Source of the DNA: Epiperipatus broadwayi
Lineage: Eukaryota > Animalia > Onychophora
NCBI GenBank assembly: GCA_028023455.1
Contig: JAQFVV010000005.1
Coordinates: 6,820,001 to 6,884,000 of the forward strand
Direction: 5' to 3'
Length of the DNA: 64,000 nt
The notes under the pieces are model-generated. The model was not told the origin of the DNA. It saw only the letters and a list, made by a program, of their open reading frames with translations, and did no database searches. This document shows positions 15,692-59,445 of the stretch, piece by piece. Positions within the stretch are counted from its first letter, which is position 1; each line of letters begins with the position of its first letter. Position numbers and translations under genes: made by a program.

Positions 15692-16183
15692 AACCACTGA
15701 ACATCACATGATCGCCATCGCTTATGCTAGCACATATCTGTTATTAAACAGGCAAAATTCTCCATACAGTAGTGCCACCCTGCACCAATCAGAGTAATCA
15801 ATGGATTCCAGAAGGCTTGTGCATAAAATCCCCATCTAGTGCCTACTCATCCAATAGCCCCAAACACTGAGTTCAGACTTATATGACTATATAAGCTGTT
15901 GAGGTTAGATTCAAAATATTGTGTTTTCATTCTCATAGTTTTGTAGTTAAGTAGAGATAAAAGTTGGCTGCTGGAGGGTTGCATTAGATCCTAAGATGTA
16001 GGTGCAGTGCTCTCAGATCCAAGACTCCTCACTGATGAAGGCCACAAGCCAGAAACTAGTCTCAGGATATTGGATGAGTAGGCACTAGATGGGGATTTTA
16101 GGCACAAGCCTTCTGGCATCTATTGATTACTCTGGTTGGCACAGGGTGGCACTATTGTATGGAGAGTTTTGCCTGTTTAATAT
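15692..16183 (+). mobile_element. Hammerhead-ribozyme short retroelement, locus 1 (inverted arm 15692-15862, sense arm 15863-16183)
   Basis: 14-bp TSD catatataaattta (15678-15691, 16184-16197); removing it rejoins the gypsy RT frame; intact ribozyme core at 16032-16061. Confidence 0.85.
16018..16074 (+). ncRNA. Minimal type I hammerhead ribozyme motif
   Basis: Stem I tccaagactcctca / tcaggatattgga (one C.C mismatch); CTGATGA 16032-16038; stem II GGC-cacaa-GCC; GAAA 16052-16055; helix III AC-TA-GT; predicted cleavage after GTC 16061. Confidence 0.78.
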
Positions 16184-17047
16184 CATATATAAATTTATTA
16201 ATTACTATAAGTTGGATCAATAAAGACTTGTTTAGATGCTCATATGTTAAATCAATTAACCATTCCTGAGCATGACACTCCTTCATGATTTCATGAATTA
16301 TTAGTAAAATTACAAAATAAAAAAAAAATTTGCAATATTTGATTTGACAGCCAGTTATTGGCTGATGCAATTACATGTAAATGACTAAAAATATATCACT
16401 TTTCATTCTGAAGATCAATCCTATGTTTGTAAAAGGATGCCTTTCAGATTGGTCAGTAGTGGGCCTGGTTTGATTAGATGTTTATGATCTTTTCTAAACT
16501 GTTAAAAGAAAAATCATAATGCATATGGACAATATTATCATTGCTTCTAAAAATATTTTTGAGCATCTAAACTATTTGCAGTTATTTTTTCATGAATGTT
16601 CTATCAATGATATAAAACTAAATTTAGAAAAATGTACTATAGCTGCAGAAGAAATTACTTATGGGGTCATTTAATTAATGAGCATGAGATTAAACCCCAT
16701 CCTAAAAAGATAGCAGCAATTCAAAAAAATCCTATACCTAAAACTAGAAAATAATTAAAATCTTTCTTAGGTTTGTGTAACTATTATCATAAATTTTACA
16801 AAAATATTTCCAGTGATACAATTTATCTACCAGTGTTATTAAAAAAGAGTGAGAAGTGGAGAAGAACTATTGAGCATATGTCTTACTTTGAAAAAAATTA
16901 AAGCTACCTTTTTAAAGGAAGTAATTTTAGCCTACCATGATTTTAATAAAAAGTTTTATCTCCAAACTGATAGTAGAAATTATGCTTTAGGAGTAGTAAT
17001 GTATCAGCTTAATGAATTACAAGAGTCTCTAATTTTGTATTTCTTAA

Positions 17048-17226
17048 AACAGGCAAAACTCTCCATACAATATTGCTACTCAGTGCAAGCCAGAGTAATC
17101 AATGGATTCCAGAAGACTTGTGCATAAAATCCCCATCTAGTGCCTACTCATCCAATATCCCCAGACTAGTTTCTGGCTTATGGCCTTCGTCAGTGAGGAG
17201 TCTTGGATCTGAGAGCACTGCACCTA
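17048..17226 (-). mobile_element. Hammerhead-ribozyme short retroelement, locus 2
   Basis: 9-bp TSD atttcttaa (17039-17047, 17227-17235); removing it restores RNase H ILYFLSRYLKG. Confidence 0.88.
17151..17207 (-). ncRNA. Minimal type I hammerhead ribozyme motif (best-preserved copy)
   Basis: Minus strand reads tccaagactcctca-CTGACGA-a-GGC-cataa-GCC-a-GAAA-CTAGTC-tggggatattgga; stem I pairs apart from a 3x2 internal loop. Confidence 0.82.
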
Positions 17227-20200
17227 ATTTCTTAAGTAGATATTTGAAAGGAATTGAGCTTAAATATTCCATAACTGAGAAGGAAGCTTTAGCTGTTGTT
17301 TGAGCTTTCCAAAGTTTTTGTTAAGGTCAGAGATAGTAGTTATGTCTGATTATAGAAGCTTAGAGTTCCTTCATAAAAGTTATTTAAGTAATGAATGCCT
17401 GATTATGAGAAGTCTTTATTATTAACAGTTTCAATGTAGCATATAGTATTATAATGGAAAAAAATATTGTGGCTGACATGCTCATTCACCATCCAGTTGA
17501 ACTAGTTTATCAAGATCCAGACACAAAATATGATAACAAATATTAATTTAACAGTGGACAAATTCATTGAAAAAGATTATGAAAACTTAGTGGTAATGTA
17601 ATCTCAGGATGTTAGATTAAATAAAGAAATTACATTTTTATTTGATCCCTCATTGTCTGTTAAACAAACTAGGTATACAACAAGGATACAAGAAAGATAT
17701 GTTATATCAGAATATCTTAATGTTTAAGTTAAATGTCAATAATGAAAGTTCTTGCAGGATAGTAATGCCAAAAAGTATAATAAACAAATTAATTTATTAT
17801 ACTCACTGTAAGTATGGTGATCAAAAGATCAAGTAGATTCTTAAAAAATATTTTTATTGGCCAAAAATGTATTCTTCTATTGTAAATAGATTAAAATGTT
17901 GAAAAATATGTTTAAAAACTAAATATAGTCAGTGATCATATCCCAGGGTATTTCAAACCATCCTTTGTCATAGGCCTAATGAATTGTTATTGTTAGATTT
18001 TTATGATCCACTTCCACTTTTTAATAGGCAAAAGTTTATATTAGTTACACATGATATTTTTATTAAGTATGTTTCAGCTTATCCAGTTCCTAAACTAGTG
18101 CTAAAAATGTAATAAAATACCTCACTAATTTTCCAATTTTTATTGGTAGGAAAGATTTTATTTATATTAACTAATCATGTTACTGTTTTTATTCCACATG
18201 GAAGAAATGGATTCAAAAACTGAATATTAAGCATATTAAGAACTCTATTAGGAATCCATAAGCCAATAAATGAGAGTTAGGGAGACTTTTTAGACTATAT
18301 GTAGAAAAGAACTATAGGCAATGGGTTAATAAACTTCCCAAAATAATCAATTTTATAAGCATAATCATAAATGAATCCAAAAAATTCATCCCTTTTAGGG
18401 TGCATTTAGAAAGGCATGAACCTTTGCTTATCAAAACTCCTTTACTTATAATTACAAAAGAAATTGACAATAGTAGTGATAGAAAAGGCTAGGATTAATT
18501 TAAAAAGGATGAGTAATAAACATCTTGTACAATCTAAATCTAAGCCACATCTATTTAATATTAATGATTATGTATTTGTTCATAGCCCTCATGTTAGTAA
18601 TCCACAAAAACACAAATTTAAAATGTTCTTACATTTACATGATGGGCCTTTCCAGATTAAAGATTAAGTTGGGGAGAATGCATTTATTCTCTTCATTCCT
18701 GAAGGAATTAGGGGAACTTATAATTCATAGAGTCTAAGATCTTTACCTCTTTAAACTAAAATATATATATTGTAAGCCTTACAAAATAAATCAAAATAAT
18801 TTATTTTTATAAAAAAAAAATTAGATTGGAGTTGATTGTAATGAAATAATAGTAATAGTTAGCTGTGAGTGATAAAGATGATCATTCAATAGCAGTTGTT
18901 TGGAGAGTTGAATGTCTACAGAACATTTAAATTTAAAAAAAAATTTTTTTTTCATGGTTCAGTCTAAAACTGTAACCTTAAAATTTGCTTGAGGAACCAT
19001 ATATATGTATATCTTATTTCTCTTCCAATAAATCAATTTATCTGACAAATGTGGTAAATAGTTTAAACTTTAAAATGTAGATATAAAACTGTTGTTCTAG
19101 GTTATTTCTTTAGATAGATCTAATGAAAAAAAAAAAATTTTTTTAAAATAACATTTAGTTTAATCTTGTAACTTTATGTGTTAAATATCTGGATTTTGCA
19201 TTTTTATTAATTTAATTTGCTCTTAGTTTAAGATACAAATGCAAATCAAATATAGTTTAAAGTAAATAAGTCACATTAAAATAAACATTTTAAATAGATT
19301 AATAATATTTGTATAATATTTTATAATAAAAATAATTAGTACAGATTGTTTAAACATTTCTAGTTAACATTTTAAATCTTACAAATATGTGTAAGTTATT
19401 TCCGCTGAGAAAAAAGTTGATTATAATTAAAGTTTATTGTATAAAGAAGTTACTATTTAATAATATTTAAACTGCAATACTATTGTTACAATTTATTATT
19501 CTCTAAAATATATTTAAGTGTTGAGAACTTTTTAAAAACAATAAAAAAGTGTTTAAATAATTTACCATTACCGTAACATTTTAATTATTGGTAAATAATA
19601 AATTATATATTAGAATTGCAATATTAATTTGTTATGACTAGAAATCCAGACAGTTTTAAAAAGATCTATTATTAGATTTTATGCCTTGACAATTAATTAA
19701 GGTCACATTAAATATCAATTAATAATGCCCCAAATCAGTTGGTCCTTGATTCATTAAGATCACTTGATTTGTATTATAAAAATAGAATACTACATGTTGA
19801 TAACTAGTAAATTAAAGAACTTAGTCTATTCAATTGAATGTAGTTCTAAAAAAATGAAAGGCTAAAACACCATCAGCTGGGCCTTCTTTCAAATTGACCC
19901 ATTCATCTCACTGCAATATATCCATTAAAAATATACACAATTTAGAAACTGCGACAACTTACTGTATCAGAGGAAGGCAACATCAAGCTGTGAAATGAAT
20001 TTGATAACATTAGAAATAGTGTATGTACAAGTATACTATCGTAATTTATTGTTTTGTTTGTGCTAATATTGGAATTAAAATAACATTACTGTGCTGATAT
20101 TATAGATATAAGAAGAATGCTTAATGCTATGAGTAATTTATTAAGCCTTTATTCTAAACTAACTATATGCTTTATAGTGCTTTGCTATAATAATAGCAAA

Positions 20201-20359
20201 TATTTCATTCATCATGCTAAATTTTTGGAAATAAATGTGCTGACTAAAGTAACATTTTTTTTGTCATGCTTAAAGTAATTTTAAACTACACTAATTATGG
20301 ATATCAGAAATATAGTTACCTTATCTTTATAATAAACTAAGTATGGACTCATTAGAGCT

Positions 20360-21010
20360 GAATTATGAGGAGATAGGAAACCATCATCATTCCCAAATAA
20401 ACATATAAAATTGAATATTAATGGAATAATGAAAAACTATGTGCAATAAGCATAGAAATCAACACAGATAATTAATTATAAGTATAAGTAAGTATATGTT
20501 CACCAGCATTTTACAAAACTAATAATCATTAATCATCAAGAATGATTAACAATAAAAATAAATCAGCAGACCATCTTGTGACTGGATTTGAAATAAGTCT
20601 ACTACAGAGCAGACAGATTATTTAGTCCATGTCAGTTTGGGTCAGATTATAAAACCCATAATTTGGGTGCACAAATTTAAGTGCTAATATAACAGTAAAA
20701 ACATAATGCTGGGATAATAAAGTATGCTTAATACATCGATGCATTGGCCATTTAGTACCGTTAATGTAATGGCCAATATAAATTTAATTTCTAATAAATA
20801 CTAAACTAAATAAAATGTAGTGCATGGGCTTTAAAGGATATTCTCTTTGCACTAATCCAGGATCATCATCAACTGGATATCCATAATCATGCATGAATCT
20901 AGCTCAGGAACAAAAGCTCTATAACTTATTAACAAAAAATATACATCTATAATTTATAATATTTTTAATCTATTCAGAATTAATTAAATTCACTGGAATA
21001 ATTTTAACAA
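20360..21010. repeat. Diverged dispersed repeat, copy 1 (partner ~42475-43150)
   Basis: Shared blocks such as aattatg..gagat.g.aaa...cattcccaaataa and ggccaat.taaa..taatttctaataaa...aataaaatgtagtg.a.gg..ctttaaagg. Confidence 0.6.
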
Positions 21011-23141
21011 TGAAATATCAATTTATTAATAACAAAAAATGTAATTAAGGTCTGCAGAATATGGCTATACACAAATTAAGCCTATCAATTTTTATGAATA
21101 CAAAAAGATATCCCCTCTTACTTTGTAATTTATAAATATGTTTCAATAGGTTTATATAAAACACATTTATATATAAGCACACAGATGTGCAGTAAAATAA
21201 TTTATGAACATTTTTGAATTGTTATAAACCTATAAATGAAATTCATTTTTATAATACATAATTAATGATTCATTTAACATATATGTACCTACATGCCACT
21301 CATTTTCATAAGCACAGACATGCTGTAACATATGGAAATTGTCATATAATGGTAAAAAATTCTCACATTTTAATGATACATAAATAATGACTTCACATAT
21401 ATAGGTATGTAATATTTACTGAGGCTGTAACCTCGAGAATATGCATGTAAAATGCAATAGGGTCCTCTACAGGTGTTTAACCACAAGCTTATGTAGCCAT
21501 GGAAATGTGTGGACTCACTGATATTTATATCATTTTATTTTGTCAAAATAATACTTATTAAAAATATATTTTTTACATAACTGCACATGTATGATATGTA
21601 AATACATAAAAATAATAAAATGAATAAAAGTCAGTAATTCATTCATCATTTAATGGTAAAAAAAAGTTTTCACTTTTTAAAACAAATATTAATTTTTCGA
21701 CAGTCCTTTATAAAGGTTTTTTTTTTTAAAAATAATATCAAATCTTTAACAGGTTACTCTTGATTATTATAAACATCTTTAAACATATTCAAGCATGTTT
21801 TTTTATTTCCTAATCTAGAAAGATTTTTGGAGTTTTCTTTTATTAATAAAATAAACTAGAAACACATCTTACTTTTACAAAAAAAAATATTTATAATTTA
21901 AAAAAATTACAATTGTCATTTTCACTAAAGAAATTATATAAAATTATTCATCAGCTGTACTTTGTATATATGGTATAGCACCTACATCTGTATTTCTTTG
22001 CATCTAGATAAAACAGCATATGTATAATTAATTCTTTAGCAAGTTGATATTTCTGTAAAAAACTCTCCTCTAATCTTTTTTCCAACCTTTTATAGTCAGG
22101 GTGAGCAAAAAAATACAGTAATTAAAAATAACTTTTTCCTATCTTGCTTGAAAAAATTAATGATTCTTCAATTCACTTTAATCCTTTGCAAAATAACTTT
22201 AAAGCATTTTTATCAAAATATATTATGCAAGTTTTATTTTTAAAAAAATTTACTCATGAAAATAGATAGTGGAATTTTACAATTACCAGTATATCTATTG
22301 TAACATAAACACATGCTTGTTTTAATTTCAAAATCAGAATTAATAAAATATTAATTAGGACTTTTTAAATGTCTAATTTGTAATAAAAAAAAATTTAATT
22401 CAAAATTATTTAATCCTTAACTGTTATTCCAGTGTAATATAGAAAATATCTACAAAATTTTTTTGTCTGTTTATTTCTACTTTTCCTTTCAACTTTATAT
22501 ATATATATATATTCATGCACACATACTGCTATGTTGTTGTATGCCATGAGACACATAGCCATCTCACTACTTCGACAATGATATGCTTTAATAATTTTGA
22601 AAAATGAAAATAACTGCATTCCCATAAATTGTTTTGTTTTCCAGGATGAGAAATATTCAACCTTCAGTATACATTTATTTTACAATGAATATATTTGTTG
22701 AAGTATGCTCTATTATGTCAAAAATTTATTTGACTTGGATATTAAGAATGTTATCTAAAACTTCACATTGCATTGAAATGTGTCAGTATTTTATTTATTG
22801 TCTCAGATATTAAAGAATTGTTATCCATTTGTTACTTTGAAACATTAAAGCTATTTTTTAATAAAGTAGTCTGGATTATAATGAAATCATCATTTGAACT
22901 GGAATGCTATAAAGTGGGTGTAGAATAAGTGATTTCAGGACTCATAAACTCTGTTTTTTTATGTATATGTTTTGCTAATAATTTATTTATGATTTTTTTC
23001 ATGTAACATGTATGGGTATTTGAGTTCTCAAAATATAATTGCAATATCATATTAACAAAGGTAATATGAATATTTAGTACAGAATTGTTTAAAGAATAAT
23101 TTGAATAAATGGATGAACAGTTGGAGATGATTTTTATAAAT

Positions 23142-24100
23142 TGTTAATTTATAAATTTTATACCTAATTATTTTTTATTATTATGTTTTTTATCAGTTTT
23201 TCATATTGTGTTAGACAAATTTTTATGAAGTTTATTCTGGCCAAGTTTTAATATTAGAGATATGATACTAATTATGCACTTGTAGATAAGTGTGGACTTT
23301 TGATTATCCCATCATTTTGTCTATCCTACTTATTGGGGTTTAGAATAATTGTTGAAGGCATGTGTATTGTGACTTATGTCTTCATTTGCTCATGATCTTA
23401 AAAGAATAGTTTTGGAAATGGTAATCGTGTTTAGCATGAATATTTGATATGTGAAAATGATGATAAAAATATTATTTGTCTAAACATTAGTTATTTTAAA
23501 AACAAGTGTACTTTATGTACATGGAGTCTAGATGTAATGTAGGAGATTTGAACATAGACTTTCCAGCTTTCTTCAGCCATCTACTTTGCTTAGCAAATTA
23601 TATATCAACTTAGTGTTGTTCTGTTGTTGGCAACATTATCTGTCAAAAAAGGTTCCTACGCTAATGGTCTATTTAGAAAGATAGTCAGATTACAAATACA
23701 AGAGACAACTTGATTATTCATAAATGATAAGTATATTTTCTTTTAAGTTTAAAATAAATATTGAAATATTATAATTATTGCATTGTGATTACATTAAAGT
23801 ATAAAACATTTATATTTGTTATATTTTATATTATTAAAATCTTTATTTTATTCTTACTTTATGATTTTCTCTTCATTATCATCATCTTCATAGTCAGAAA
23901 ATTCAAATCACAAAGATATATATGAATTATAAGAATACATAATATATGTCATGTAATTAAAATTCAGGCAGTGTATTGTTGAAGCTACAGTAAGATTTTT
24001 GATTATATTATTTTAGTCTTAATTATAAGAAATTTTAAGGCGACTTTTGAGTATGAACAAAATTCCCTTCCTTACTCATTGTACCACAAAGGTTATCACA
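23142..24100 (+). repeat. ~1 kb LTR-like repeat, copy 2
   Basis: Starts tgttaattt, ends ggttatcaca; colinear with 12449-13451 (e.g. gattatcccatcattttg.ctatcctacttatt and tagaataattgttgaaggcatgtgtatt.tgacttatg). Confidence 0.65.
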
Positions 24101-25020: not shown

Positions 25021-26434
25021 TTACTACTCAAAGATGAAGTAGAAAACTAGTATTTTATATCTTTATAATTGTGTAATTTATATACTAAAAATAAAATTAA
25101 TTTCAGAAAAATAAAAATGCTTTATTGCATATAATGATATGGTAGTGAGATGAGTTGAATCTGAGATATAAAGATAATCTTGTCTTTTTATAAAAGATGT
25201 AATAATAGTTTTGGTTTATTGTGTTGGGTTAGCTGAAGTCATAAATGGTAAGGTTATAATATAAATATATATCTATTAATTGAAAGAACACATTCTCATA
25301 TTACTTATGTGAATGTCTGCATATGTATGAAACATATTGAAATCTATGTGTGTACACATTAATGATGATAAAGTTTTAAAATTAAATTGTATTTTCCTTT
25401 TTTTAGTCCCATCTAAAAGTATAATGTTAATGATAATAGCATTTCTGACAAGCTTAAATAAAGCCCTGAAGTGATTCATTTTTATGTTCATTCTGATTTA
25501 ACACATTTATTCTTAAATTATCATCTAACATTGATATGTAAATTTTATTCTTTCAGAATTAAATCAGTAACTTGCTTGTTTAGGCTTTGAAAAATTATTA
25601 TCATCATCAAATTTGCTTTGAGATCATTGAAAATAAACTTTAAAATTTTTAAAACCTAAAAGAAGGAATTTTAAAATATTTTACAATGATGGGAAGAACA
25701 AGATTAAAATATTCTGTGAGACTGACAAAGACAAAAAATACATATACATGCATTATAATTTTCAAATTTATAATTTCTTTATTTTTTTTTCAAATAGTAA
25801 GTAGTGAGTTTAAACACATGGTGATCAAACTGTATTATGTAAATTATTTTATAAATGAATTTAATGTACATGTACAAGCAACATAGAATATTAATGAAAT
25901 AGATTGTTAATTCAAAGTAAATTAATTATTTTTAAAAAGGGAGTTTGTGATCAATATCAATGAAATTAAACAATGGAATTGCTTTTAACACCAATTGATT
26001 TGATTACTAATATTTTGACTTGAAATCTTCTGAACCATTTCTTTACAAATTCTAATTCTGGTTGCTAAATTTTTTTAGCTTATGTTGATCTTTTGTGTAA
26101 ATTTATCAATTGGCAAAACTGGTGAAAAGAATGGTCTTTAAATATTATAGTTTATCACCACATCAAATCATACAAGACCTTCTTTTTCATTAATTTAATA
26201 TTGCCAAATTTAAGTTAACAATTATTTACCCCACCAACTTTATTTAGGTATTTATGGTAATGCTTAATGTAAGTCAAAGGTAATATTTTTGCTCTTAAAG
26301 AGGTTGAAGGAACAAAATTAAATTTAAAAAAAACATCAAATTTTTTTAATTTTTATATTCTTTTTTAGATTAAAATTATCATTTTCAATCCACTGTAAGA
26401 TAAAAGTCTCTTTAAGCTTATTTTATTTTCTCAG

Positions 26435-26672
26435 AATCAATAAACATCACATGATCACCATTTCCTATGCTTGCTTATAACTGTTATTAAAACAGGACAA
26501 CTCTCTATATGTATTACCACTCACTGACGAAGGCCACGATCCAGAAATTAGTTTAGGGATATTGGATGAGTAGGTACTAGATGGGGATTTTATGCACAAT
26601 CCTTCTGGCATCCATTGATTACTCTGGCTTACATTGAGTGGCAATATGTATAGAGAGTTTTGCCTGTTTTAA
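26435..26672 (+). mobile_element. Hammerhead-ribozyme short retroelement, locus 3 (inverted tail arm 26435-26523, then sense arm)
   Basis: Tail aatcaataaacatcacatgatcacc...aaaacagg, then a strand switch at ctca (26520-26523) into CTGACGA...GAAAttagtt; ends gcctgttttaa. Ribozyme partly degenerate; no TSD found. Confidence 0.8.
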
Positions 26673-27540
26673 AGCCCATTGATGATAATATTAACTCTAC
26701 ACAGTAATATTTCTAGCTCATCATATGGGTATAATCCATGTTATCTAAGATGGTTAGAACATTTATTAGTTCTTGCTGGTTATATTAGTAATGACCTAGA
26801 ATGGTACCATTAGCAACATAGATTTAAACTTTATACCCTTTGAAAAGATAGATCCTTTTAGCTTTTGAAAGTCAATAAATAAATAAATAATACTTCTGTA
26901 TATAATATAAATATAATATAAAATAACAATTCGTGTCAATTGTTAATACAGAGTTTAATATAAATAAATAAAATAATAACAAATAATATTTCCAAGCACT
27001 TTCAACTCTTACGAGTCCTTATCAAGGCAGTGTAAAAAATTCTATTTTCTCCTAGGTGATGAATTTAACATTTCATTGTATTGGCCAGGAACAACTAATC
27101 GGAAAGCTGGTTAATTTCGAATTCATAGCACAAGATGAATTTTGTATAAGATATGATTCTTTAATCTTGTGTTTTTTATCATGTGTTTCGTGCATTTATA
27201 TTGTAAAATCCTTTGGACTACATATATGGACTGTATTATTTTGGTGAACATAAAAAGCTGAATAAACTGTATCATCTTCTCTTGCTCTATTATATGTATA
27301 TTTATGTTGTTGAAGGCGATATTTAATATATATATATATTGTAGTGCAATATATGTTGAAGAAACCAAAACAAATATTATTTGTTATTATTTTATTTATT
27401 TATATTAAACTCTGTATTAACTTTTGAAAGTCACTGATAATGTTAAGTGAGTGAAACAAAACAGATATAAGAACAGTTTTATTTAAGTAATAATGTGCAA
27501 GTTGTCTATATATTTTTTTCACATAATATTACAGCATTTG

Positions 27541-27744
27541 AACCACTGAATGTCACTTGATCACCATTTCTTAGATCTAGGTGCAGTGCTCTCAGATCCA
27601 AGGCTCCTCACTGATGAAATCCACAAGCTAGAAACTAGTCTGGGGATATTGGATAAGGATTTTATGCACAAGCCTTCTGGCATCCATTAATTACTCTGGC
27701 TTGTACAGAGTGGCACTACTGTATGAAGAGTTTTGCCTGTTTTA
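27541..27744 (+). mobile_element. Hammerhead-ribozyme short retroelement, locus 4
   Basis: 13-bp TSD with one mismatch attaca(g/t)catttg (27528-27540, 27745-27757); 30-nt inverted tail, then sense arm. Confidence 0.85.
27597..27653 (+). ncRNA. Hammerhead ribozyme motif with damaged stem II
   Basis: CTGATGA 27611-27617, GAAACTAGTC 27631-27640 and stem I are intact; stem II is mutated to atc-cacaa-gct. Confidence 0.55.
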
Positions 27745-29373
27745 ATTACATCATTTGGTGAGACATTTGCATCACTAGATAACAATATTACATTGACTTT
27801 TCATTTAAATTAATTAAATACACGTACAAAAAAATAGATATTCTATTACCAGATGCCTCATCATGGTTGAAACTATATATATGAATAATAATAATAGATA
27901 ATACACACTTAGAAAAAAAATATAAGTACACATCTTACTCTCAAGTAAACAAATAGAATATATACAGTAGGTGGATCAATATCAAGAAAAAACATGATAT
28001 TAGTTAATAATTAAAACAACCAAGAGAAAGGGGAGAAAAATATTTACATTTGTTTATAAATATAGTGACAAAATAAATAACTACTCTTTCAGTACCTGTC
28101 TTTTATTCTGCTGACTTTTGTCTTTGTCTATTATCTTTTGTCAGCAAAATATTATTTAAAAATTTGACACTTTGTTCCAGAAATGATACTCCTTAGAATG
28201 ATTTTTTTTTTTTACTTTCCATTAGTTCACGGAGGTTTAAAATGAATTTCTCATCTGTTCATGGAGTTTTGAAATATATTTCTCATTTTTCTCTGAGTTT
28301 GAAATGATTTCTTATCCACTATTTACTCCTGTGTATTTTATGATCAAACAATTTTCTCTATGTGTTTTTTTAAAAAATTGTGGATTTTGCCAATTAACAA
28401 AATGAATCGTATTTCATCAATGATCAGATGTAGTTCGCTGGTCATTCTAAGTAAATTTTTCTTCTCTCTTGGTAAGGCACACTTATGTATGCATGTATGA
28501 TAGAGCTGGAATGGAGTAATTCCAAGTTTTTTTTTTACATATTAGCTCATGCAGGTGAATAATTTTATTTTCATTTTCCATGGAGCACTATGCTGACAAG
28601 GTATGGAGTGCATACGTTTTTTTTTTGCAGGTCACTTGTTTAAAATTTAATTTTTATACAAAACAATCACATATTTGATTTACGATGTACAGTTTTTGAG
28701 TTTCCAATTTTTAGTGCATATATTCATGAGGCAATGGTTTTTACAATAAAAAAAAAATCTTGTAGTCCAAGTGATTCTACATCACATGCTTTCATAATTG
28801 TAGACTGATTGACCTTAAATTTTTATTGACAGTCCTTTTCATAGCTTATCAAACTTAATTGCAGTTTAATTAAAAATCCCCTCTATAGTTATTATCAATG
28901 TCTGCTTTTTGATAGTCACGGGAAAGAATAAATTATGATGATTAATCATCATTGAAAATAGAAAAAGGGAAAAGAAAAAATTATTTTATAAATGAAACAG
29001 TTAAAACTTCTATCATGGAGTTGATTGTTTCTTTTCCTTTTTCATTTTTCCCAAATTAATTTTTCAAACTAGTTTCTTTTTGTATTTGTTTTTGTATAGA
29101 AACATTTGTTTGAGATGAAATGAAAAGAAACTTATATGCATATCACTCAAACAAAACTCTTTATTTACTGGGGTTTTAGAATTATACTATTAATTATTAA
29201 CATTGTATAATTTAATCCTTTATTTAACAAGATTTTAGAATGAAAATGCTGTTAATTATTATCTTTTTTATTTGACATTTATATTTAATGTTTGATGTAG
29301 CTACACATAGCTACAGTATATATAATTTCTAATATATTTGATGCTTTATCATTTCCATTTCTACTATTTAGAG

Positions 29374-31919: not shown

Positions 31920-32022
31920 GTTTAGAGTACGGTATATATGAATTTTAAATGTGTACTGAATTATTTGCCAAAATAATATTAATGGGAATTTTAATCTTTT
32001 GGAAGAATGCACTAATTTATTA

Positions 32023-38730: not shown

Positions 38731-38848
38731 TACCTTTTTTTCTACTCCTTTTGTTTATTTTTGAAAAATATTCATTTTTCATTTTTCATGATTCTTTAAT
38801 TAAGTACTTCGCAATTATATTTTATTGTAATTTTAAAAAAAATTTATT

Positions 38849-46415: not shown

Positions 46416-48137
46416 TTGCAAAATACAAAAAAAAGCTCACAGGAGTATAAATTTTTCATTTCAGTAAATGATTGCAGAATTCAGAAAAATAACTTAAAAA
46501 TAGATGAAAGAACACATACAAAGAGAAAACTTTTCCGGTGCAATATGTACGACTATAGAAATATTGAAGAAATTTTTTTAAAAAAACATGAAAGGGTATA
46601 TATAGGAGAAAGTTGTTCTTTCCACTACCCCTTTTATGATTATCAAGCTACAAGGAAAACAAGTTTTAAGACAGCTGAAAGAACACCTACAGGAGAGAAG
46701 CCATTTAATTGTAATCTTTGTGAGTACAAAACTACATTTAAAACTAATTTTAAAAGGCATCAGCAAACACATACAGGAGAAAAACCTTTCCAATGCAAGT
46801 TTTGTGTTTACAAAGCTATTCAGAAAACTAGTTTAAAGATACATGAAAGAATACATACAGGAGAAAAACCGTTTCATTGTAATTTTTGTGACTATAAAAC
46901 TGCATTTAAAACTAGTTTTAAAAGGCATCAGCAAACACATACAGGAGAGAAAGCATTTCAATGTATTTTGTGTGATTTCAAGGCTAATGGAAAAAGACAA
47001 TTAAAAATTCATGAATATTCTCACAAACCTGAAAAACCATTTTATTGTAATTTTTGTGATTATCAAACTTCAGCTAAAAGTAGTTTTCAAAGACATCATC
47101 AGACACATACAGGAGAAAAACCTTTCCATTGCAATTTTTGCGATTACAAAGCTACTCAGAAAATTAGTGTACAGTTACATGAAAGGACACATACTGGAGA
47201 AAAACCATTTCAATGTAGCTTCTGTGACTATACTGCCACTAAAAAAATAAATTTAAAAATTCACGAATATTCTCACACAGGCGAAAAACCATTTCACTGT
47301 AGTTTTTGTGATTACAAAACTCCTAGAAAATCAAGTTTAGTGTTACATGAAAGAACACATACAGGAGATAAACCATTTCACTGTACCTTATGCCATTTCA
47401 AAGCCAATGGAAAAAGACAGTTAAAAATTCATGAATATTCCCACAAAGCTGAAAAACCATTTCACTGTAATTTTTGTAATTACCAAACAGCAGTGAAAAG
47501 TAGTTTCCAACGGCATGAAAGAATACACACAGGAGAAAAACCTTTCCAATGCAGTCTTTGTGATTACAAAACTGCTGAGAAAACACGTTTAAAAATTCAT
47601 GAAAGAAGACATACAGGAGAAAAACCATTTTACTGTAGCCTGTGTGATTACAAGGCTATTGAAAAAAAACAATTAAAACTTCATGAATATGTTCACACAG
47701 GTATAAGACCATTTCACTGTAATTTTTGTGAATACAAAACTGCTGTGAAAACAAGCTTAAAAATACATTTAAGAACACATATAGGAGAAAAGTTATTCCA
47801 ATGTACCTTGTGTGATTACAAAACTTCGTACAAAAGTGTTTTAAAAAAGCATCAAAAAACCCATACTGGAGAAACTCCTTACCAATACAGTTTAAATGAT
47901 TGTAAAGTTGTTTCTCAGAGTAGTTTGATAAAACTTAAAAAATATATTGATATGAATTATTCTTCTTCTCTAAACTTCCAAAAATTGAAATGTGCACCAA
48001 AAGATAGTCCAAATAATGAAATGTTTAAGTGTCATTTGTGTGATTACAAAGATACTGTAAACACTGTTACGAGAATTCATGAAGCTAGTCATTTCACTAA
48101 TTATGACACTCTCGAGTTCTTTATACAATTGCTGTGA
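46416..48137 (+). CDS. C2H2 zinc-finger protein (14 tandem fingers plus 1 distal; degenerate N-terminal fingers); true start uncertain
   Basis: Uninterrupted 573-codon frame with CxxC-x12-HxxxH repeats and TGEKPF linkers (array 46710-47864). The ORF track starts at a TTG, so an upstream exon or a later ATG is likely. Confidence 0.9.
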   Translation: MQNTKKSSQEYKFFISVNDCRIQKNNLKIDERTHTKRKLFRCNMYDYRNIEEIFLKKHERVYIGESCSFHYPFYDYQATRKTSFKTAERTPTGEKPFNCNLCEYKTTFKTNFKRHQQTHTGEKPFQCKFCVYKAIQKTSLKIHERIHTGEKPFHCNFCDYKTAFKTSFKRHQQTHTGEKAFQCILCDFKANGKRQLKIHEYSHKPEKPFYCNFCDYQTSAKSSFQRHHQTHTGEKPFHCNFCDYKATQKISVQLHERTHTGEKPFQCSFCDYTATKKINLKIHEYSHTGEKPFHCSFCDYKTPRKSSLVLHERTHTGDKPFHCTLCHFKANGKRQLKIHEYSHKAEKPFHCNFCNYQTAVKSSFQRHERIHTGEKPFQCSLCDYKTAEKTRLKIHERRHTGEKPFYCSLCDYKAIEKKQLKLHEYVHTGIRPFHCNFCEYKTAVKTSLKIHLRTHIGEKLFQCTLCDYKTSYKSVLKKHQKTHTGETPYQYSLNDCKVVSQSSLIKLKKYIDMNYSSSLNFQKLKCAPKDSPNNEMFKCHLCDYKDTVNTVTRIHEASHFTNYDTLEFFIQLL

Positions 48138-48611
48138 CACTTAATTTTGATTATCTGGTGATGTTGGTAAATTTTTCAGAATTAAAAAGAATACAAACAT
48201 ACTTTTTATACCAAAAAGAAAAAATAATTAATTAAAATTTCAGCTGCCTGCTCCAATTTGCAATATGATAAACAATTTTTAACATACTGTATGCAAGCAA
48301 ATAATTATTTAAGATTACTATTTTGCAGATCTGTAAGATTTTGAAAATCAGCTTATAATAAATTATTTAGTATGAGTAATAGATACTATTGTTTTCCAAT
48401 ACAGTTTTAATCAAGAATTGGTTTTTAATCTCTAGATTCATCTACTATAAGTCTGAATAATCATTGGATATCAGAGGGCAGGGTATTATAAGTTCCAGAT
48501 CGCCAGACTAATTTCAGCCATTTGTGTTCAATGCTAATTTGTCCATGTAGCAGTTTTCTGTTTTTATTTATTGAGGTACAAACTGCTCGATTTCTATGAA
48601 GATTTTTAATA

Positions 48612-48772
48612 GAACAGGCAAAACTTACTATACGTATTGCCACTCACTGCAAGCTAGAGTAATCAATGTATGCCAGAAGGCTTGTGCATAAAATCCCCAA
48701 TCTCGTGCCAACTCATCCAATATTTCCAGACTAGTTTCTGGCTTGTGGCCTTCATGTGATGTTTATTGGCTT
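48612..48772 (-). mobile_element. Hammerhead-ribozyme short retroelement, locus 5 (ribozyme truncated inside CUGAUGA; short inverted tail at right end)
   Basis: 13-bp TSD aagatttttaata (48599-48611, 48773-48785); strand switch at tcat (48752-48755) into catgtgatgtttattggctt. Confidence 0.85.
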
Positions 48773-48971
48773 AAGATTTTTAATAACTAAATCTCATTTA
48801 TGTTGTATAAGCTGTAAGAAATCAGCTCTTTTTAACACAGAATTGTCTAGGATCTGTTTTAATTTAATTATTTGATTGTGAAAACTTTATTGTAGAAGAT
48901 TGCAAGTGTTAATTGTTTTATTTGAAAATGATTAATGAAATTCAACATTACAAAATCACTAGATTCTTTCT

Positions 48972-49125
48972 GCAATAAACATCACATGATCACCATTTCT
49001 TATGCTTGCTTATAACTTATTAAAACAGACAAAATTCTCTATACGTATTACCACTCAGTGCAAGCCAGAGTAATCAATGGATGCCAGAAGGCTTGTGCAT
49101 AAAATCCCCATCCAGTTCCTATTCA
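48972..49125 (-). mobile_element. Same retroelement family, locus 6 (tail plus 3' part only, no ribozyme core)
   Basis: taaacatcacatgatcaccatttcttatgcttgcttataac..taaaacag...aaaatccccatc; candidate TSD ctttct(g/c)caa at 48966-48975 / 49126-49135. Confidence 0.8.
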
Positions 49126-51719: not shown

Positions 51720-52135
51720 CCAAACATAGGAAGACTTTTTAGGCAATCTTTTAGCCATTTTATAGTTTTTAAATCAAAGAATAGCAAATGAAAATTATTT
51801 ATGAATTCTTGCAAACACATTTATTTTTAAATATTTAATGTATAGCATTCTCTTGGATACTTTTGAATTGTAACCATTATATGGAAACATAATTTATAAT
51901 GAAGCCATAGTAGCACTATTATCCAATTCAATATTTTTAATATCAATAAATTCAAAAGATGATTGAGTCATATATTTATCAAAATGATGGAGCCATATAT
52001 TTATCAAAATCCAGCATATCTTGAAGCAGTTTACCAATATATTTTGCAGTTAAATAAATATATGCCTCAAAAATCTATTATTAATCTGAGAAGATTTTCA
52101 TCCTAGTGAAGATTAATATCAAATATACGTGGACA
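51720..52135 (-). pseudogene. Penelope-like reverse transcriptase relic
   Basis: Manual translation CPRIFDINLH*DENLLRLIIDF*GIYYLTAKYIGKLL ... SSFEFIDIKNIELDNSATMASL ... WLKDCLKS resembles PLE RT motifs PRIYGLPKIHK..PLRPII, Y.LAKYL..LL and NS.EFI..L. Confidence 0.55.
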
Positions 52136-55026
52136 TACAAAGAGAAGGATATATGAGCTGTTTATTTTGAAAGTGATTTAAGTCCCTTTTTCAAAAAATC
52201 AAGTTGGCTGTTATAGTATTTACAATTTTATCTTTTTATTTTTAAACAATTTGCTACTAATATATTCTAAATCACTTAAATTTTGTAAACAGAAAATTAG
52301 CTAGTTAATAAAATGATAAAAAAAAATTATTTTGAAAGTGGCTTAAATCCATTTTGAAAAGTTTCAAATTGATATGCAATGTATTATGTAAAATTTTATT
52401 AGATAAGAGTTCTACTTTATGTCTTCATTATTATTAAAATAACAATGTTCGATTAGCTCATATAATGATTTTTTAAATAATAGTAATTCCATGAAATATA
52501 TAATTTTAATATATTAACACAAATAATAAAATAAGAAGGATTTTTAATGTCCTTAAAAGATATTAATGGTAACCAGAGTGAGTGCATATACATATATTGT
52601 AACTGTCAGAATTCTGCAACCCACATGAAAATCACCTGAGGACAATTTACATGTGCATTCCATGTTCTGACATCACGGATTAATGATTTTTTTTTTTTGC
52701 AGCCCACTATGGTCAGGGAGAAACAAGAAACTATTTTACTTCAGTTATTGATTGTAAATAATGATGACAAACTGCCAAAAATAATGAGACATATACAATT
52801 TATTTATGTATATACAAAAAAACACATTGGCAGCACTTTAGTTAATTGATTTATAAATTAATTCATGGTAAAGAAACCTTTTTAAATCTTATTAGTATTA
52901 TTTTAATTTATATTACACCCAGATATAGCATACAGTATGTTAAATGACTTTAAACAATTAATATTTGATAATTTCTAATTTAGGATATTATTATCATTAG
53001 TTGTTTTTGAATGGATCCCAATCTACTGTATAGATTTCCAATCGCTCAAACCCCTCATTATCGCTATTCTAAGACTAAACAACTCTGCCAAATGAGATTA
53101 ATATGATATAAACTAAGAATGATTTAACTGACTGCTGTAATCAACTTCAGGTTATTATATTAGTAGAAAATTAAATAATAAAATAATTGTAAAATACATC
53201 TGTACTACAATAGTTTCTGATCAAGAACCAATACATGTATAAATTATACTCATGGTAGGAATTCCACTGCGTACTATCACTATAAGACATATGAAATAAA
53301 GCAGATAATATACAATAGGAACTTTTCATCTATCGCACATCAATGCACTAAATGAATAATGAAAGTAAATTCACAAATGATTTTACAATCATTTAATATT
53401 AATGCATTATATAAAAATGAGTTTCAGATGTAACAAACATAACTTGAATTGATGGTTAACATCTGTCCGTTTCTATCATTTATATCACTGCAAAATCCAA
53501 AATAGTTTGTCAAACTGACCATCTATTTAATATAACCTTTATCTAGTATGTCTACTGCGTGGTTGACCTCCATAATTTATAAGTTTACTGCTTTAATATA
53601 TTAAAGTGGAAATAACAATTAATGTACAACTTTTAATAGCATGGTCAGAGATTATGAAAATATGCTTGAACTGAGTATTATAAAATTATTACTTTAAAAT
53701 TATTGCCGCTTAAATTATGGCTTGCTAAAGAAAATGCAATAATTTCCATACATGCTCATAAACAGATTAGAACTAATAATTATTCATTAACATTTTTTTA
53801 CTAGAATGAAGATTAATGAGAAATTTGTTTAAAGTTCATACCTCTTATTCAGCTTAATTTAGTTCAGTCCTTTGGCTACTTAGATATCTATTTAATTTTG
53901 TTTTGGCAGCTGGTTCTTCCTGAAGCATTGGACATCAGATTTGTTCATATAGGTTAATGCATAATGGACATGTTCAGATAGTTTAATATGTAGACTGCTT
54001 TTACGGAATTCTGCAATGGGTTTTTTTAGCTTGTCCTGCCAGTTTTACAGAGTGAAGCAAATAATGGCTTCTCTACTCTTGCATCATAGATCTGGAAAAG
54101 CAACAGAATAATAATCATCTTAGTATAGCAGACGAATAATGGAAGCAGAATCACAACTGAAAAATAATCGCAGAATTATCTTCTGAATAAATTGTCAGCA
54201 CTATTGATATTCACTGAAGTTAGCTTATCAGTAAAATTCGGATCCATTGCTTGTCTTTTGAATCATTTGATCTATTGGCTATAAATAACTCCAAAGAATC
54301 TGCTGTGGTCCGCTGTTTATTTGCCCAATATTATATTTGCAAGTTCTTATCTTTGAGCAGGAATAACTGCCTTTTTAATTAAATCATGTCAATTATTTAT
54401 CTCCTTATTTTAATCTATCGATCTGTTTACACGTATTTTAATTACTTTTTTCTAGAATGTTATTCCTACTTTTAATTATTGTTAAAAGAAAACACTTTTT
54501 GCTTTTAACCTATTTTTAAGGTAAATATAGAATTAATTAGCTTTTTTTAGAAAATATTTTATTTAAACTGATTTAACAAAATAACTATAATTACCATACG
54601 ATATATATTTATCTGTGCATATAACATATAATTTTTTTTATTAAAAATTTAAAATTTTTTCATGAAATAACATTACTGACATTAAGTATATATGTGTGTG
54701 TGTGCAGAAAGGAGTTTGCTGTTAACTGAAAGGAGACCCTTTAATTCCTCTTGGAGTCCTTAAAGGAACTGAGCAGGGCAAATTCCTAATGTCAATTCCA
54801 TATGTTCTTGTTGTTGCAGCTGTTATTACTATGTGATTATTCATATAGTATAGGAACATGGATGGGCTGCTCACCAGCATGCATTAGCCAGCATAGTGAG
54901 TTTATTGGCTTTTTACCTCTGAGTTTAAGATCAAGAAACACCATGGTCTTTCTTCTCAGTTGCCTGATAAGGCAGAATGAATGTTTGTGTAAATGATAAA
55001 TATTTTTCCAATAGATATATACAATT

Positions 55027-57960
55027 ATGACAGACAAAATAAATCATGGCCCTCATTCCCATGAGGCTGTAAAGTCACCAACCAAGGCAGCAGTTGGTGG
55101 CCGAAGGTGGAGGGTACTAAGAATCCCCTGATTGCAGACCCAGGCTGCCATTTGATGACAACTTTTTATTTAGGTACTTATAATTGCAGATCACTTTCAA
55201 GTGAAGGAAGATTTCAAGAATTAGAAGAACTGTCTTATATTAAATGGGACATTATTGGACTTTGTGAAGTTAGAAGAAAAGGTGAAGAGACAATTGATTT
55301 AAAAAGTGGACAAGTACTCTATTATAAAGGCCCAAACATTGGAAATACAAGTGGAGTAGGATTCATTATAAATAAAAAGTGGAAGAACAACATTGGGGAG
55401 ATTAATGGTGTATTGGATAGAGGGGCAAGATTAGTTATACGACTTAATAGCAGATACCAAATGCAGATAATTCAGGTTTATGCCCCAACAAGTTCTCATA
55501 GTGATGAAGTAATAGAAGATTTTTATATGGATGTACAAAAGGCTTTTGATCAGAGTAAACATTTTAAAATTGTTATGGGAGACTTTAATGCTAGAATTGG
55601 TAAACAAATGAAAGTGCTGTAGGTAATTTTGGTTATGGTAATAGAAATGAGAGAGGACATAGACTTGTGGAATTTGCAGAAAAAGAAAAACTATATTATG
55701 AATTCTTTTTTTGAGAAAAATGTCAAAAGGAAATGGACATGGAAGCATCCAAATGAAGGTACTGCAGAATTGGATTATATTTTGACTAACAGAAAATACA
55801 TATTTCAACATTGTAATGTTCTTAATAATTTTAACACAGGAAGTGATCATCAATTAGTAACATGTAAGATACATGTTAATGCAAAACTAGAGAGACAAAA
55901 ATTATTAAGAAAAACAATATTTACAATTGATATTCCTAATCTTCAGAAACATTCTAATGAATTTAAATTAGAATTTACAAATCGGTTTCAAGTATTAGTA
56001 GATTTTGAACATGATTCCGATTTGAATGAAATTAATATGAAAATAACTGATACACTTTTAAAAACTGCAACAAAGATAGCTGGTAGAAAAAAGCAGCAAT
56101 TGACCCAATAAAATTTCTACTGAGACTAGAGAATTTATGAAGAAAAGAAGGAATATGAAGATATACAAAAATGATGCATTAAAAAGGATTGAATATCTCG
56201 AATTTTGTAAAATGGTGCGGACAAGAGTTGAAAATGATATAAGAAAGTATAACTGAACTAGCAAGGAAAGCTGTAGAAAAGAAGAAAAGTCTCAAGAGTA
56301 TAAAACAACATTTTGGTATTGGTAGGAAAAGAATGTAAAACAACATTTTGGTATTGGTAGGAAATTTATATCTGCAATAAGAAAAAAAGATGGAATTATT
56401 ACTAAAAAGAGATATGACATCATGAAATGGGTAGAAGACTTATCAAGAATTATATAGTAATAAAGAACAAGTATCTCCTATATCATATCTTTTGAATTGT
56501 CCAAAATTTTAAATGAAAAAGTGAGACATGCAATTAAATGTATGAAGAAAGAAAAGGCTCCAGGTAATGATGGAATTATAATTGATATATTAAAAGAAGT
56601 AGGTGAAGAAATATAATTTTTTTTAGCAAAGTTATATACCAAATATCTAAATGATAAAGATGTACCAGATGATTGAAAGAATGCAGTATTAATATTTTAA
56701 AAAGAAGATATTAGAAATTACAAACCTATCAGCCTTTTATCAGTTGTATACAAAATTTTTACCAAGATAATTACAACTCGTCTACAGAGAATATTGGATT
56801 TCCACCAACCAAGAGAACAAGTTGGATTTAAAAGTGGTTTTAGTACAGGAAATTATATCCAGGTATTGAGAGAAGTTATAGAAAGGACAAATGAATATGA
56901 GTTGTCATTATGTTTTGGATTTGTAGATTATGAAAAGGCATTTGATTCTATAAACATTTCTTCAGTGATTAAAGCATTGGATCATCAAGGTATCGATCCA
57001 GGATATTGTCATATTTTAAAGAATATTTATAAAAATGCAATAGCAACAATTAGATTACATGAGGATACTGGGAAAGTCAACATTGAGAAGGGTGTAAGAC
57101 AGGGTGACTTCATATCTCCAAAATTTTTTACAGCAGTGCTGCGAGAAGTATTTTGTGGATTAAAATGGGAAGCTAAAGGAATGAAAGTAAATGGAGATTA
57201 CTTAAGTCATTTATATTTTGCAGATGATGTAGTTGTTTTTGCAAATAATGCTTTAGAACTGCAGGAAATGTTGCAGGAGTTATCAGATGAAAGTAGGACT
57301 AAAGATAAATGTTAAAAAGCCTAAAGTAATGTTTAATGGATTTTCTCAAAATATGAAAATAAAAAATTGATTGTGATGAGTTAGAAAAAGTTAACAGTTA
57401 CAAATACCTTGGTCAGATTATTAATACAGATGGAAACATAATGGTTGAAATTAATCATAGAATTAAACTTTGTTGGATTGCTTTATTGGTAGAAATGACT
57501 TGATACCAAAAGGAAATATGCCTATGTGTTTGAAAAGGAAGGTTTTTAATGTGTTTTACCAGTTCTTACTTATGGATCTAAGACTTGGACACTTAATAGA
57601 AGAGCAATACAGAGACTTCAGACCATTCAAAGAAGTATGAAGAGATGCACGTTGGGAGTAACAAGAAGAGATAAGAAACAATATATGGGTAAAAGAACAA
57701 ACAGGTATTACTGACCTCATTGAAAAAATTAAAGGACTGAAGTGGAGTTGGGCTGGACATATTGTTAGAAGAGATGATAATAGATGGACAATTGAAATTT
57801 TAAATGATTTCAAGAGATTGTAAGAGACCACATGTGAGATGGTTGGATGAAATAAGAAAGTGTGCAGGGGTGATGTGGAGAAGAGAAGCTAAAGATCAGA
57901 GAACATGGATTGAACTTGGAGAGACCTTCATTCTGTAGTGGATTGATAATGGTTGATGAT
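55027..57960 (+). mobile_element. RTE-clade LINE (APE + RT), near full length, frameshifted
   Basis: APE GTYNCRSL, WDIIGLCEVRR, IIQVYAPT, MGDFNARIG, LDYIL, GSDH; RT YKPISLLSVVY, EQVGFKSG, VDYEKAFDS, GVRQGD.ISPK.F, FADD; RTE-type 3' end (tgatgat). The 5' UTR may extend to ~54700. Confidence 0.93.
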
Positions 57961-58399
57961 TATATATATATAGCTTCAATATATATGTATTTATTTAATG
58001 GTAACTTAAAAATGGGAAATCTCATGATAGTACCAAATACACATAACAGATTACTATATTTTCATCCAGTCTGCATTTAAAAATACTTTGAGGAACATTA
58101 TTGTTTCATGGGTTAAAATCTTTTGATTGTTTTTTTAAATTTGGTTTGCTTAATTTTAACTCTGTTTTTAATATAAATTTCAGCATATTCAAAAATGTTT
58201 ACCTTCAAGTTACCTCAGACAGTGATGTATGTAAGTAAAAAAATTGACTTATACATGTTGAAAATAATTCACATAATTAAAAATTGTAACTGAGTTTAGA
58301 TTATTTTTATTCATAGAAATTGTACCCATAAGATTTTATCAGAAAGAGCAGATGATTTAAGTAATAATTCTAATTTTAGAAATATTGGAAAGAGAAAAA

Positions 58400-59134
58400 G
58401 AATTGTAGAAACATGTTCCTCAATAGATGATGAAGATAATATCTTAGTCGATGTTAGCTCTTATTCCACAAAAAAAAAGTGAAGAAAAATGAGTGATATA
58501 CCCAATTCTGGAAACCAAACATGATGCAGAAAAAATATATACTTAAACTGGTAAAATTATATATGCAATTTTTTTTCAAAAACAAAAATGGCCATTGTTC
58601 AAAGGCTTGTATACAATTTTTTAATGCAAAAAGAAGGGAAAATATTTTCCACAGATTTTAGAATTTGGATGATTTTAATAAGCAAAGTATATTGTTTTAT
58701 GAAACTATCAAGCACCTAAATGTCAAAGGAAAACATTTTAAGAAACTAAAGGATTTCTGAGAAATTATTTTATAAGTATTTCATAAATACTACTCGTGAG
58801 AAATTTTCCATTTGTAAAAAATTCTTGAATATCTTTAATATAACCAAAAGAGATGATTAAAACGTTTTAAATCTGAAAATACAGGAAATGCTTTATGTGA
58901 GTATATGAGTGAATCACCATAAAATTTTCTGAAAAAGAAAAAAAGCTGTTCAAAATCATTTGCAAAGTTTTTCTTGATTTGAATCTCATTATACTAGATC
59001 TTGTAATCCTAACAGAAAATATGACACCTTGATCTAAATGTAAAGAAGATATTTAATCCCTTATATATAAAGAAAATAATACAAGCTCTGTTAATGAATA
59101 GATTTATAAAAAAAAATTTCATGAACATTTTAAT
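58400..59134 (+). pseudogene. Sola-like (Sola1-type) transposase N-terminal relic
   Basis: Fragmentary translation gives HLQSF..ESHYTR..N..RKY..DLNVKK..YKKKFHEHFNL, as in the Sola1 ESHY.R...F..FNL region; broken by ribozyme locus 7. Confidence 0.5.
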
Positions 59135-59445
59135 TTAAAACAGGCAAAACTCTCCATACAGTAGTGCCACTCAGTGCAAGCCAGAATAATCAATGATGCC
59201 AGAAGGCTTGTCCATAAAATTCCTATCTAGTGCCTACTCATCCAATACCCCCAGACTAAGGTGGCTGCTGGAGGGTTGCATTATATCCTTAGATCTAGGT
59301 GTAGTGCTCTCAGATCCAAAGCTCATTGATAAAAACCACAAGCTAGAAACTAGTCTGAGGATATCGAAAAAGTAAGGGGATTTTATGCACAAACCTTCCT
59401 GCCTCCATTGATTACTAAGGCTTGCTACTGGATGAAGAGTTTCCT
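59135..59445 (+). mobile_element. Hammerhead-ribozyme short retroelement, locus 7 (inverted arm 59135-59258, decayed sense arm 59260-59445)
   Basis: aaaacaggcaaaactctcc...cccccagacta, then gtggctgctggagggttgc...gaaactagtctgagg; CUGAUGA decayed to ttgataa. Confidence 0.82.

Follow-up and report, generated by a model that had tools for sequence, protein, structure and literature searches.

A very abundant non-coding retroelement of Epiperipatus broadwayi, probably derived from Penelope-like elements and carrying a predicted dimeric hammerhead ribozyme

Insertions of the family in the analysed window

Analysis of a 64,000-nt stretch of contig JAQFVV010000005.1 of the onychophoran Epiperipatus broadwayi (hereafter the window, positions numbered from its first letter) showed the presence of a family of short non-coding repeats with a hammerhead-like motif, which probably represents a retroelement derived from Penelope-like elements (PLEs). 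BLASTN comparison of the window with itself (E 1e-11 to 1e-125) yielded seven loci as the whole set of family matches. The same seven loci had been named in an earlier sequence-only reading of this DNA, and the locus boundaries derived from target site duplications (TSDs) agree with its coordinates to within a few bases. That reading spoke of seven copies; the seven loci do belong to one family, but they are insertion events and not simple copies, since five of the seven consist of two arms in head-to-head orientation, giving 12 arms in all.

The arms are described below by their position in the repeat unit. Outer arm ends fall at one of two sites, namely, site A at unit ~229-236 (...GCCUGUUUAA) and site B at unit ~278-288 (...GUGGUUUAA), 51-54 nt beyond site A.

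15691-16183, locus 1, two-armed, delimited by BLASTN and TSD boundaries
15691..15865, minus strand, locus 1 inverted arm, unit ~110-287, outer 3' end at site B, with the tail
15866..16183, plus strand, locus 1 forward arm, 5'-truncated partial tandem, unit 364-457 then 1-236, outer 3' end at site A
16032-16061, plus strand, locus 1 hammerhead core, intact, predicted cleavage after 16061
15678-15690 / 16184-16196, locus 1 TSD, clear, 13 bp, catatataaattt
17048-17226, minus strand, locus 2, single 5'-truncated arm, unit 50-229, end at site A
17164-17193, minus strand, locus 2 hammerhead core, intact
17039-17047 / 17227-17235, locus 2 TSD, clear, 9 bp, atttcttaa
~26433-26672, locus 3, two-armed, delimited by BLASTN and boundaries
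26433..26520, minus strand, locus 3 inverted arm, unit ~197-286, end at site B
26521..26672, plus strand, locus 3 forward arm, unit 80 to ~232, end at site A
26524-26554, locus 3 hammerhead core, degenerate
27541-27744, locus 4, two-armed, delimited by BLASTN and TSD boundaries
27541..27569, minus strand, locus 4 short inverted arm, only the tail end at site B, unit ~258-287
27570..27744, plus strand, locus 4 forward arm, unit 42 to ~233, end at site A
27611-27640, plus strand, locus 4 hammerhead core, intact
27528-27540 / 27745-27757, locus 4 TSD, clear, 13 bp with one mismatch, attaca(g/t)catttg
48612-48773, locus 5, two-armed, delimited by BLASTN and TSD boundaries
48612..48752, minus strand, locus 5 inverted arm, unit 89-229, end at site A, truncated within the hammerhead core at 48752
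48753..48773, plus strand, locus 5 forward arm, only ~17-21 nt of the tail end at site B
48600-48611 / 48774-48785, locus 5 TSD, clear, 12 bp, agatttttaata
~48973-49125, minus strand, locus 6, single 5'-truncated arm, unit 126 to ~285, end at site B
59138 to ~59445, locus 7, two-armed, delimited by BLASTN and boundaries
59138..59258, minus strand, locus 7 inverted arm, unit ~106-229, end at site A
59259..59445, plus strand, locus 7 forward arm, older copy, ~80% identical, unit 12 to ~226
59325-59355, locus 7 hammerhead core, degenerate

TSDs of 9-14 bp had been reported for five loci. Four are clear (13 bp, 9 bp, 13 bp with a mismatch and 12 bp, at loci 1, 2, 4 and 5), but the fifth is a weak 6-bp direct repeat at locus 6 (ctttct), and at the boundaries of loci 3 and 7 a clear TSD is not evident. 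The core with GAAACTAGTC is intact in 3 of the 12 arms (loci 1, 2 and 4) and is absent from those arms in which it is neither intact, nor degenerate, nor cut. The inner end of the inverted arm of locus 1 coincides with the predicted cleavage site or is no more than 1 nt away from it.

Repeat unit and copy number

The unit was defined by aligning the locus 1 copy with 30 genomic loci fetched with it, which are 92-95% identical to locus 1. The full unit is ~455 bp long, with head-to-tail periods of 449-457 bp (e.g. in loci L005, L018 and L028), and the family is arranged both in head-to-tail tandems and in head-to-head foldbacks. Its G+C content is 39%. The window has ~27% G+C, in keeping with an animal genome. 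The unit is non-coding, as the sequence-only reading had stated: stop-to-stop frames in natural tandems reach 61 aa at most. Unit RNA taken from cleavage site to cleavage site is predicted to fold with -156 kcal/mol (z = -5.7) or -140 kcal/mol (z = -4.0) relative to dinucleotide shuffles, and none of 100 shuffles was as stable.

In the 5.6-Gb assembly (18,588 contigs), the pattern CTGANGA-N11-15-GAAACTAGTC has 50,204 exact matches on the forward strand and 50,420 on the reverse strand, 100,624 in total, against 3 for the reversed control; 30/30 core-pattern matches sampled from the start of contig 1 are members of the family. This corresponds to a genome average of one intact core per 56 kb, to which degenerate and core-less arms have to be added; two insertions were present in 97 kb of unrelated loci (~one per 49 kb). 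The family is estimated at ~1e5 to 2.5e5 insertions genome-wide. The suggestion that one copy per 9 kb of the window implies a very high copy number thus held in its outcome, with at least 100,000 copies, but not in its premise, as the density in the window is ~3-6 times above the genome average.

Locus L013 contains, beside a young copy, further copies at 2-179, 300-607 and 631-795 that are 74-76% identical to the unit. They belong to a subfamily of greater age or to a sister family.

An A-box-like TAGGATAGTGG and a B-box-like AGTTCAGACCC, ~64 nt apart, were noticed by eye at unit ~300-380 (L028:2330-2410) and are recorded as a lead only; this stretch belongs to the part of the unit that is present only in tandems, and the B-box-like motif is one half of a perfect hairpin. 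ARAGORN detected no tRNA in six loci. A full-text literature search for the motif strings returned only unrelated primers.

In 15 public runs from six studies, carrying eleven coded organism labels, 6-50% of the sampled words of one tandem copy were found, and thousands of contigs from three runs match the tandem copy, foldback joints included. The family is therefore abundant in several of the labelled organisms.

Insertion footprint

The insertions of the window and of 60 further loci, 75 in total, were mapped onto the unit. Nearly all of them are foldbacks in which a minus arm is followed by a plus arm, with both 3' ends directed outward. The outer ends fall at GUUUAA sites and lack A-tails. 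Among the 48 insertions with two classifiable ends, 47 combine site A with site B, one has site A at both ends and none has site B at both ends; independent choice of the ends would give about half mixed insertions. In 30/47 insertions the two flanks share an exact direct repeat of 9 bp or more at the boundaries, compared with 2.8% of mismatched flank pairs. The TSDs are mostly 9-15 bp long, with a mode at 13 bp.

The inner arm ends are widely scattered, as expected from the frequent 5' truncation. Run-off of reverse transcriptase (RT) at a cleaved 5' end was considered for these ends and rejected: only locus 1 and L008 lie within 2 nt of the predicted site, and two other arms start 5 nt upstream of it.

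Two units of the same insertion have about twice as many non-majority variants in common as two units taken from different insertions. In this respect cognate, non-cognate and tandem pairs are alike, and the outcome shifts with the identity cut-off.

A similar footprint has been described for PLEs, in whose insertions 5' truncation and partial tandems are accompanied by a neighbouring inverted copy, itself 5'-truncated, by a tail at only one end and by a TSD (PMC8557442).

Hammerhead motif

In 60 aligned copies, the order of elements is helix I, CUGA(U/C)GA, helix II, GAAA, ACUAGU with the predicted cut after GUC, and helix I. All intact copies contain CUGA(U/C)GA, 13 nt, GAAA and CUAGUC. The hammerhead proposed for the family has a complete core (CUGAnGA, helix II, GAAA and GUC), intact in three arms of the window. 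Helix I, the open helix, is formed by 6 + 6 bp flanking a small internal loop and is 94-96% paired in the 60 copies; helix II has three Watson-Crick pairs and a 5-nt loop. Under the hammerhead pairing scheme 90.3% of cells are paired, as opposed to 24-42% with slid 3' partners, although this is a weak control, because the structure was drawn from the consensus.

Covariation had been named as a check of the fold, and one compensatory pair was found, in helix II. Whole-genome counts for pair 10.2/11.2 are 42,292 for G-C, 7,568 for A-U, 1,530 for the A.C mismatch and 1,099 for G-U. A second large subfamily thus appears to bear a compensated helix II pair, which probably goes back to one evolutionary event, so that the support is real but thin. 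Most motif variation in dead copies is single-sided decay, uninformative on structure.

Helix III consists of the palindrome ACUAGU and cannot be formed in the monomer, because it would need a 2-nt loop, which is disallowed in ViennaRNA. When two copies are cofolded, the minimum-energy structure is the hammerhead dimer, in which ACUAGU forms a helix III of 6 bp in trans (-38.4 vs 2 x -17.4 kcal/mol). Each unit contains a single hammerhead motif of the minimal type I, which has a palindromic helix III and the design of dimer-dependent hammerheads and may act as a ribozyme. Hammerheads of PLEs are likewise minimal versions without helix III (PMC6155905).

At position N7, copies are divided genome-wide between CUGAUGA and CUGACGA, and CUGACAA, with the inactivating change G8A, is frequent as well (e.g. 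at L028:2090-2154). This pattern is the expected product of CpG decay from an ancestral CUGACGA.

Resident Penelope-like elements

A profile search of the genome for the GIY-YIG endonuclease domain gave at least 10,244 candidate sites, with open frames of up to 901 aa; all 150 scored matches were above the Pfam cut-off. Among the matches listed, neighbouring ones are arranged either minus-then-plus or as same-strand tandems with a period of ~3.1 kb, and none plus-then-minus, so that the layout of the PLEs is the geometry of the short family.

The sampled PLEs (L031-L060) contain hammerhead-like motifs with non-canonical cores (AUGACUA or UUGAAAA, not CUGAUGA) and a GAAACGUUG helix III, located ~570-700 nt past the start of GIY-YIG (e.g. 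L044, L050, L051 and L057). In one PLE family, represented by L044, L050, L055, L056 and L060, the hammerhead lies ~130 nt upstream of the 3' end, for which there are two alternative positions 45-50 nt apart. These distances correspond to the way in which hammerhead, site A and site B are spaced in the short element.

Proposed mechanism

The sequence-only reading had proposed a non-autonomous element moved by Penelope machinery, and each structural feature that could be tested on this basis was found: tandems, a minimal hammerhead, the insertion footprint, TSDs and a genome rich in PLEs. The link to PLEs is drawn here from the insertion footprint. The element has the structural features both of a metazoan non-LTR (long terminal repeat) retrozyme and of a non-autonomous PLE derivative. 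It is considered likely that the family is a very abundant non-coding retroelement derived from PLEs, a non-LTR retrozyme in the published sense, which is mobilised by PLE enzymes and processed by a dimeric hammerhead.

Under this interpretation, genomic tandems would be transcribed into a multimeric RNA. Because the ACUAGU palindrome is all that helix III consists of, two hammerheads would pair through it, and the resulting dimer, with a helix III of 6 bp, would cut after GUC. RNA of unit length would be set free and might be closed into a circle by a host ligase. The RT and GIY-YIG endonuclease of a resident PLE would then make a staggered cut, and the 3' ends exposed on both sides would serve as primers on the RNA, at the GUUUAA sites A and B. 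This would leave two cDNA arms that converge, a tail on one side only and a TSD. The circular RNA and the PLE source of the enzyme are presumed steps of this scheme.

For the rule that one end lies at site A and the other at site B (47/48), a form of twin priming is offered tentatively and with considerable doubt, in which both target cut ends prime a single RNA at two GUUUAA sites 51-54 nt apart. The second reverse transcriptase would trail the first along the template, and the palindromic helix III could help by keeping two templates together. If this were true, the Penelope 'tail' would simply reflect how far apart two built-in priming sites lie, and endonuclease resolution would not be what produces it.

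Alternative explanations

Several results weigh against the proposed scheme, and part of them would be expected if the same PLE-mobilised element carried an inactive hammerhead or a hitch-hiking relic, the multimeric RNA being used uncut and the ribozyme having no role in the life cycle. The closing position 10.1/11.1 of helix II is A.A in 53/60 copies and U-A in 6/60, G-C being usual elsewhere. No compensatory change was found in helices I and III in the 60 copies, of which the result for helix I is the adverse one, and, taken by itself, the 65-nt motif has no clear advantage in stability over its shuffles (z = -0.7 to -1.6). The Rfam hammerhead models, also named as a check beforehand, gave no match at the gathering threshold in the window or at E <= 10 in stretches of 1.7 kb and 0.8 kb; the only Rfam matches, to 'MIR7533', were rejected as spurious products of the inverted arms. 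Standard Rfam scans therefore miss this ribozyme type entirely, which leads to under-reporting in annotations of this genome; in published work, too, dedicated descriptors were needed for minimal PLE motifs (PMC8557442). Insertion 3' ends lie at sites A and B, away from the cleavage site, and the inner ends form no convincing cluster there either (~3-6 of ~118 nearby). Among the same ~118 arm ends, hot spots are located instead at unit 154-158 (7 cases) and 197-201 (6 cases), as exemplified by L014:1208, L021:1205, L016:1204 and window position 26520; such recurrent inner junctions hint that template switching or joining favours certain points. Between the tandem units of one arm, similarity is no higher than between units of opposite arms, where the copying of one monomeric circle predicts otherwise. 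All 15 public runs are Logan contigs of unrecorded library kind, in which the opposite-strand joints suggest DNA. PLE clades without hammerheads thrive, and hammerheads may merely parasitise PLEs (PMC8557442). An inactive motif is nevertheless unlikely, because neither major subfamily has lost the full core, the two differ in helix II by a compensatory change, and near-identical motif designs of the axolotl cleave as dimers.

Other adverse results concern the partner element. The 30 best GIY-YIG loci, a small sample relative to the number of PLE sites, have no BLASTN or TBLASTX similarity to the unit apart from two incidental family insertions. Long copies adjoining a PLE reading frame had been suggested as a check, and none was found: within 1.5 kb of 60 family copies there is no PLE-like open reading frame (ORF) of at least 130 aa and no coding sequence for RT or endonuclease. 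This last result at the same time speaks against the copies being 5'-truncated 3' ends, that is, pseudo-LTR fragments, of an ordinary autonomous PLE with no distinct element involved. PLE insertions are mostly 5'-truncated, so that 3' fragments predominate (PMC8557442), and most copies in the window are shorter than 320 bp; but ORF-less head-to-tail repeats with a period of 449-457 bp occur at many independent loci, and same-strand core spacings among the matches listed are 414-456 bp, not ~3 kb, making this explanation highly improbable. Scarcely tenable at all is a SINE (short interspersed nuclear element) dependent on a LINE (long interspersed nuclear element), or a plain satellite, with a ribozyme resemblance by chance. 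High copy number, small size, lack of coding capacity and the LINE-like RT and endonuclease remnants in the window (55107-57315) would agree with it. However, no tRNA, 5S or 7SL head was detected (ARAGORN in six loci; Rfam), a poly-A or microsatellite tail is missing, the copies are dispersed and flanked by TSDs, LINE insertion does not leave a foldback with a tail on one side, and by simple counting the chance of a core with its helices in 455 nt is far below 1e-3.

Other features of the window

A decayed LTR-retrotransposon pol region, from RT to RNase H and with many stops, occupies 16500-17700 and is split by locus 2 at 17048-17226; by-eye reading indicates that its frame picks up again after the insertion (...ELKYSITEKEALAVV). 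Another LTR-retrotransposon remnant, with ORFs containing Retrotrans_gag, aspartyl protease, RVT_1 and RT_RNaseH domains, lies on the minus strand at 4119-7632, the most GC-rich part of the window (36-39%). The plus strand contains at 46416-48137 a 573-aa open frame consisting almost entirely of C2H2 zinc fingers (zf-H2C2_2, E = 8.6e-97, 13 stretches), ~475 bp upstream of insertions 5 and 6, and at 55107-57315 the LINE-like remnant, with pieces of an Exo_endo_phos endonuclease and an RVT_1 reverse transcriptase. GC skew is strong at 56-58 kb (+0.36). Otherwise the family is a repeat of a well-understood kind, and no effect on host genes is evident within the window.

Comparison with known systems

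Metazoan non-LTR retrozymes are low-GC, non-coding tandems of 150-450 bp with a type I hammerhead in each repeat and TSDs longer than 4 bp; their RNAs are 'highly self-paired', and the hammerheads of invertebrate retrozymes are mostly active as monomers (Cervera & de la Pena 2020, PMC7229834). The family resembles them in its non-coding, low-GC, tandem unit with one type I hammerhead, in TSDs longer than 4 bp and in the highly self-paired unit RNA, while its 455-bp unit is at the upper size limit. Circular and linear RNAs of retrozymes are known, whereas the family is known from DNA sequence alone. The closest design is that of axolotl Rtz_331 and its motif HHR_Amex1, in which helix III has 1 bp with a palindromic tetraloop and cleavage is dimer-dependent (PMC7229834). 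The single pair and palindromic tetraloop of helix III in the family point to the same dependence, and the number of motifs, ~1e5 per genome, is also similar. For the mismatch at the helix II base, A.A in the family, the U.U of HHR_Amex2 is a precedent.

The motif is similar to the hammerheads of PLE pseudo-LTRs (Cervera & de la Pena 2014, as reported in PMC6155905 and PMC8557442), which are of type I, effectively lack helix III and are located at a short distance from the 3' end of the element. Shared with PLEs are also the partial tandems, the inverted copy truncated at its 5' end and the tail on one side; in contrast to PLEs, the family has no RT/GIY-YIG ORF, and its tail is ~51-54 nt long, against the quoted 30-40 bp for PLEs. 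The resident PLEs sampled differ from the family in their cores and in the GAAACGUUG helix III and have no sequence similarity to its unit.

Retrozymes have been reported to co-occur with PLEs, to resemble PLE pseudo-LTRs and to be non-autonomous PLE derivatives (Li, Clavereau & Pollet 2026, bioRxiv 10.64898/2026.07.22.740005). This is what the sequence-only reading had proposed as well. In that work sequence homology to PLE termini was found in Xenopus, whereas here a homologous PLE was not found among the 30 GIY-YIG loci. Another counterpart is MRC1 of Chlamydomonas, one of the non-autonomous Chlamys elements, a short non-coding PLE derivative with pseudo-LTRs and multicopy head-to-tail insertions; it differs from the family in its green-algal host, in the lack of a canonical hammerhead and in a documented similarity to the 3' end of its autonomous partner (PMC8557442).

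The family bears on two questions about PLEs, namely, the purpose of their hammerheads and the origin of their tandem, inverted and tailed insertions, for which it offers a very large natural data set: its copies number at least 1e5, fall into two ribozyme subfamilies and include thousands of complete insertions flanked by TSDs. The idea of the identity of retrozymes with PLE derivatives is already published (bioRxiv 10.64898/2026.07.22.740005); the element is a clean and very abundant example of that kind and not a new class, distinguished by its copy number and by the clarity with which it displays the one-sided tail rule.

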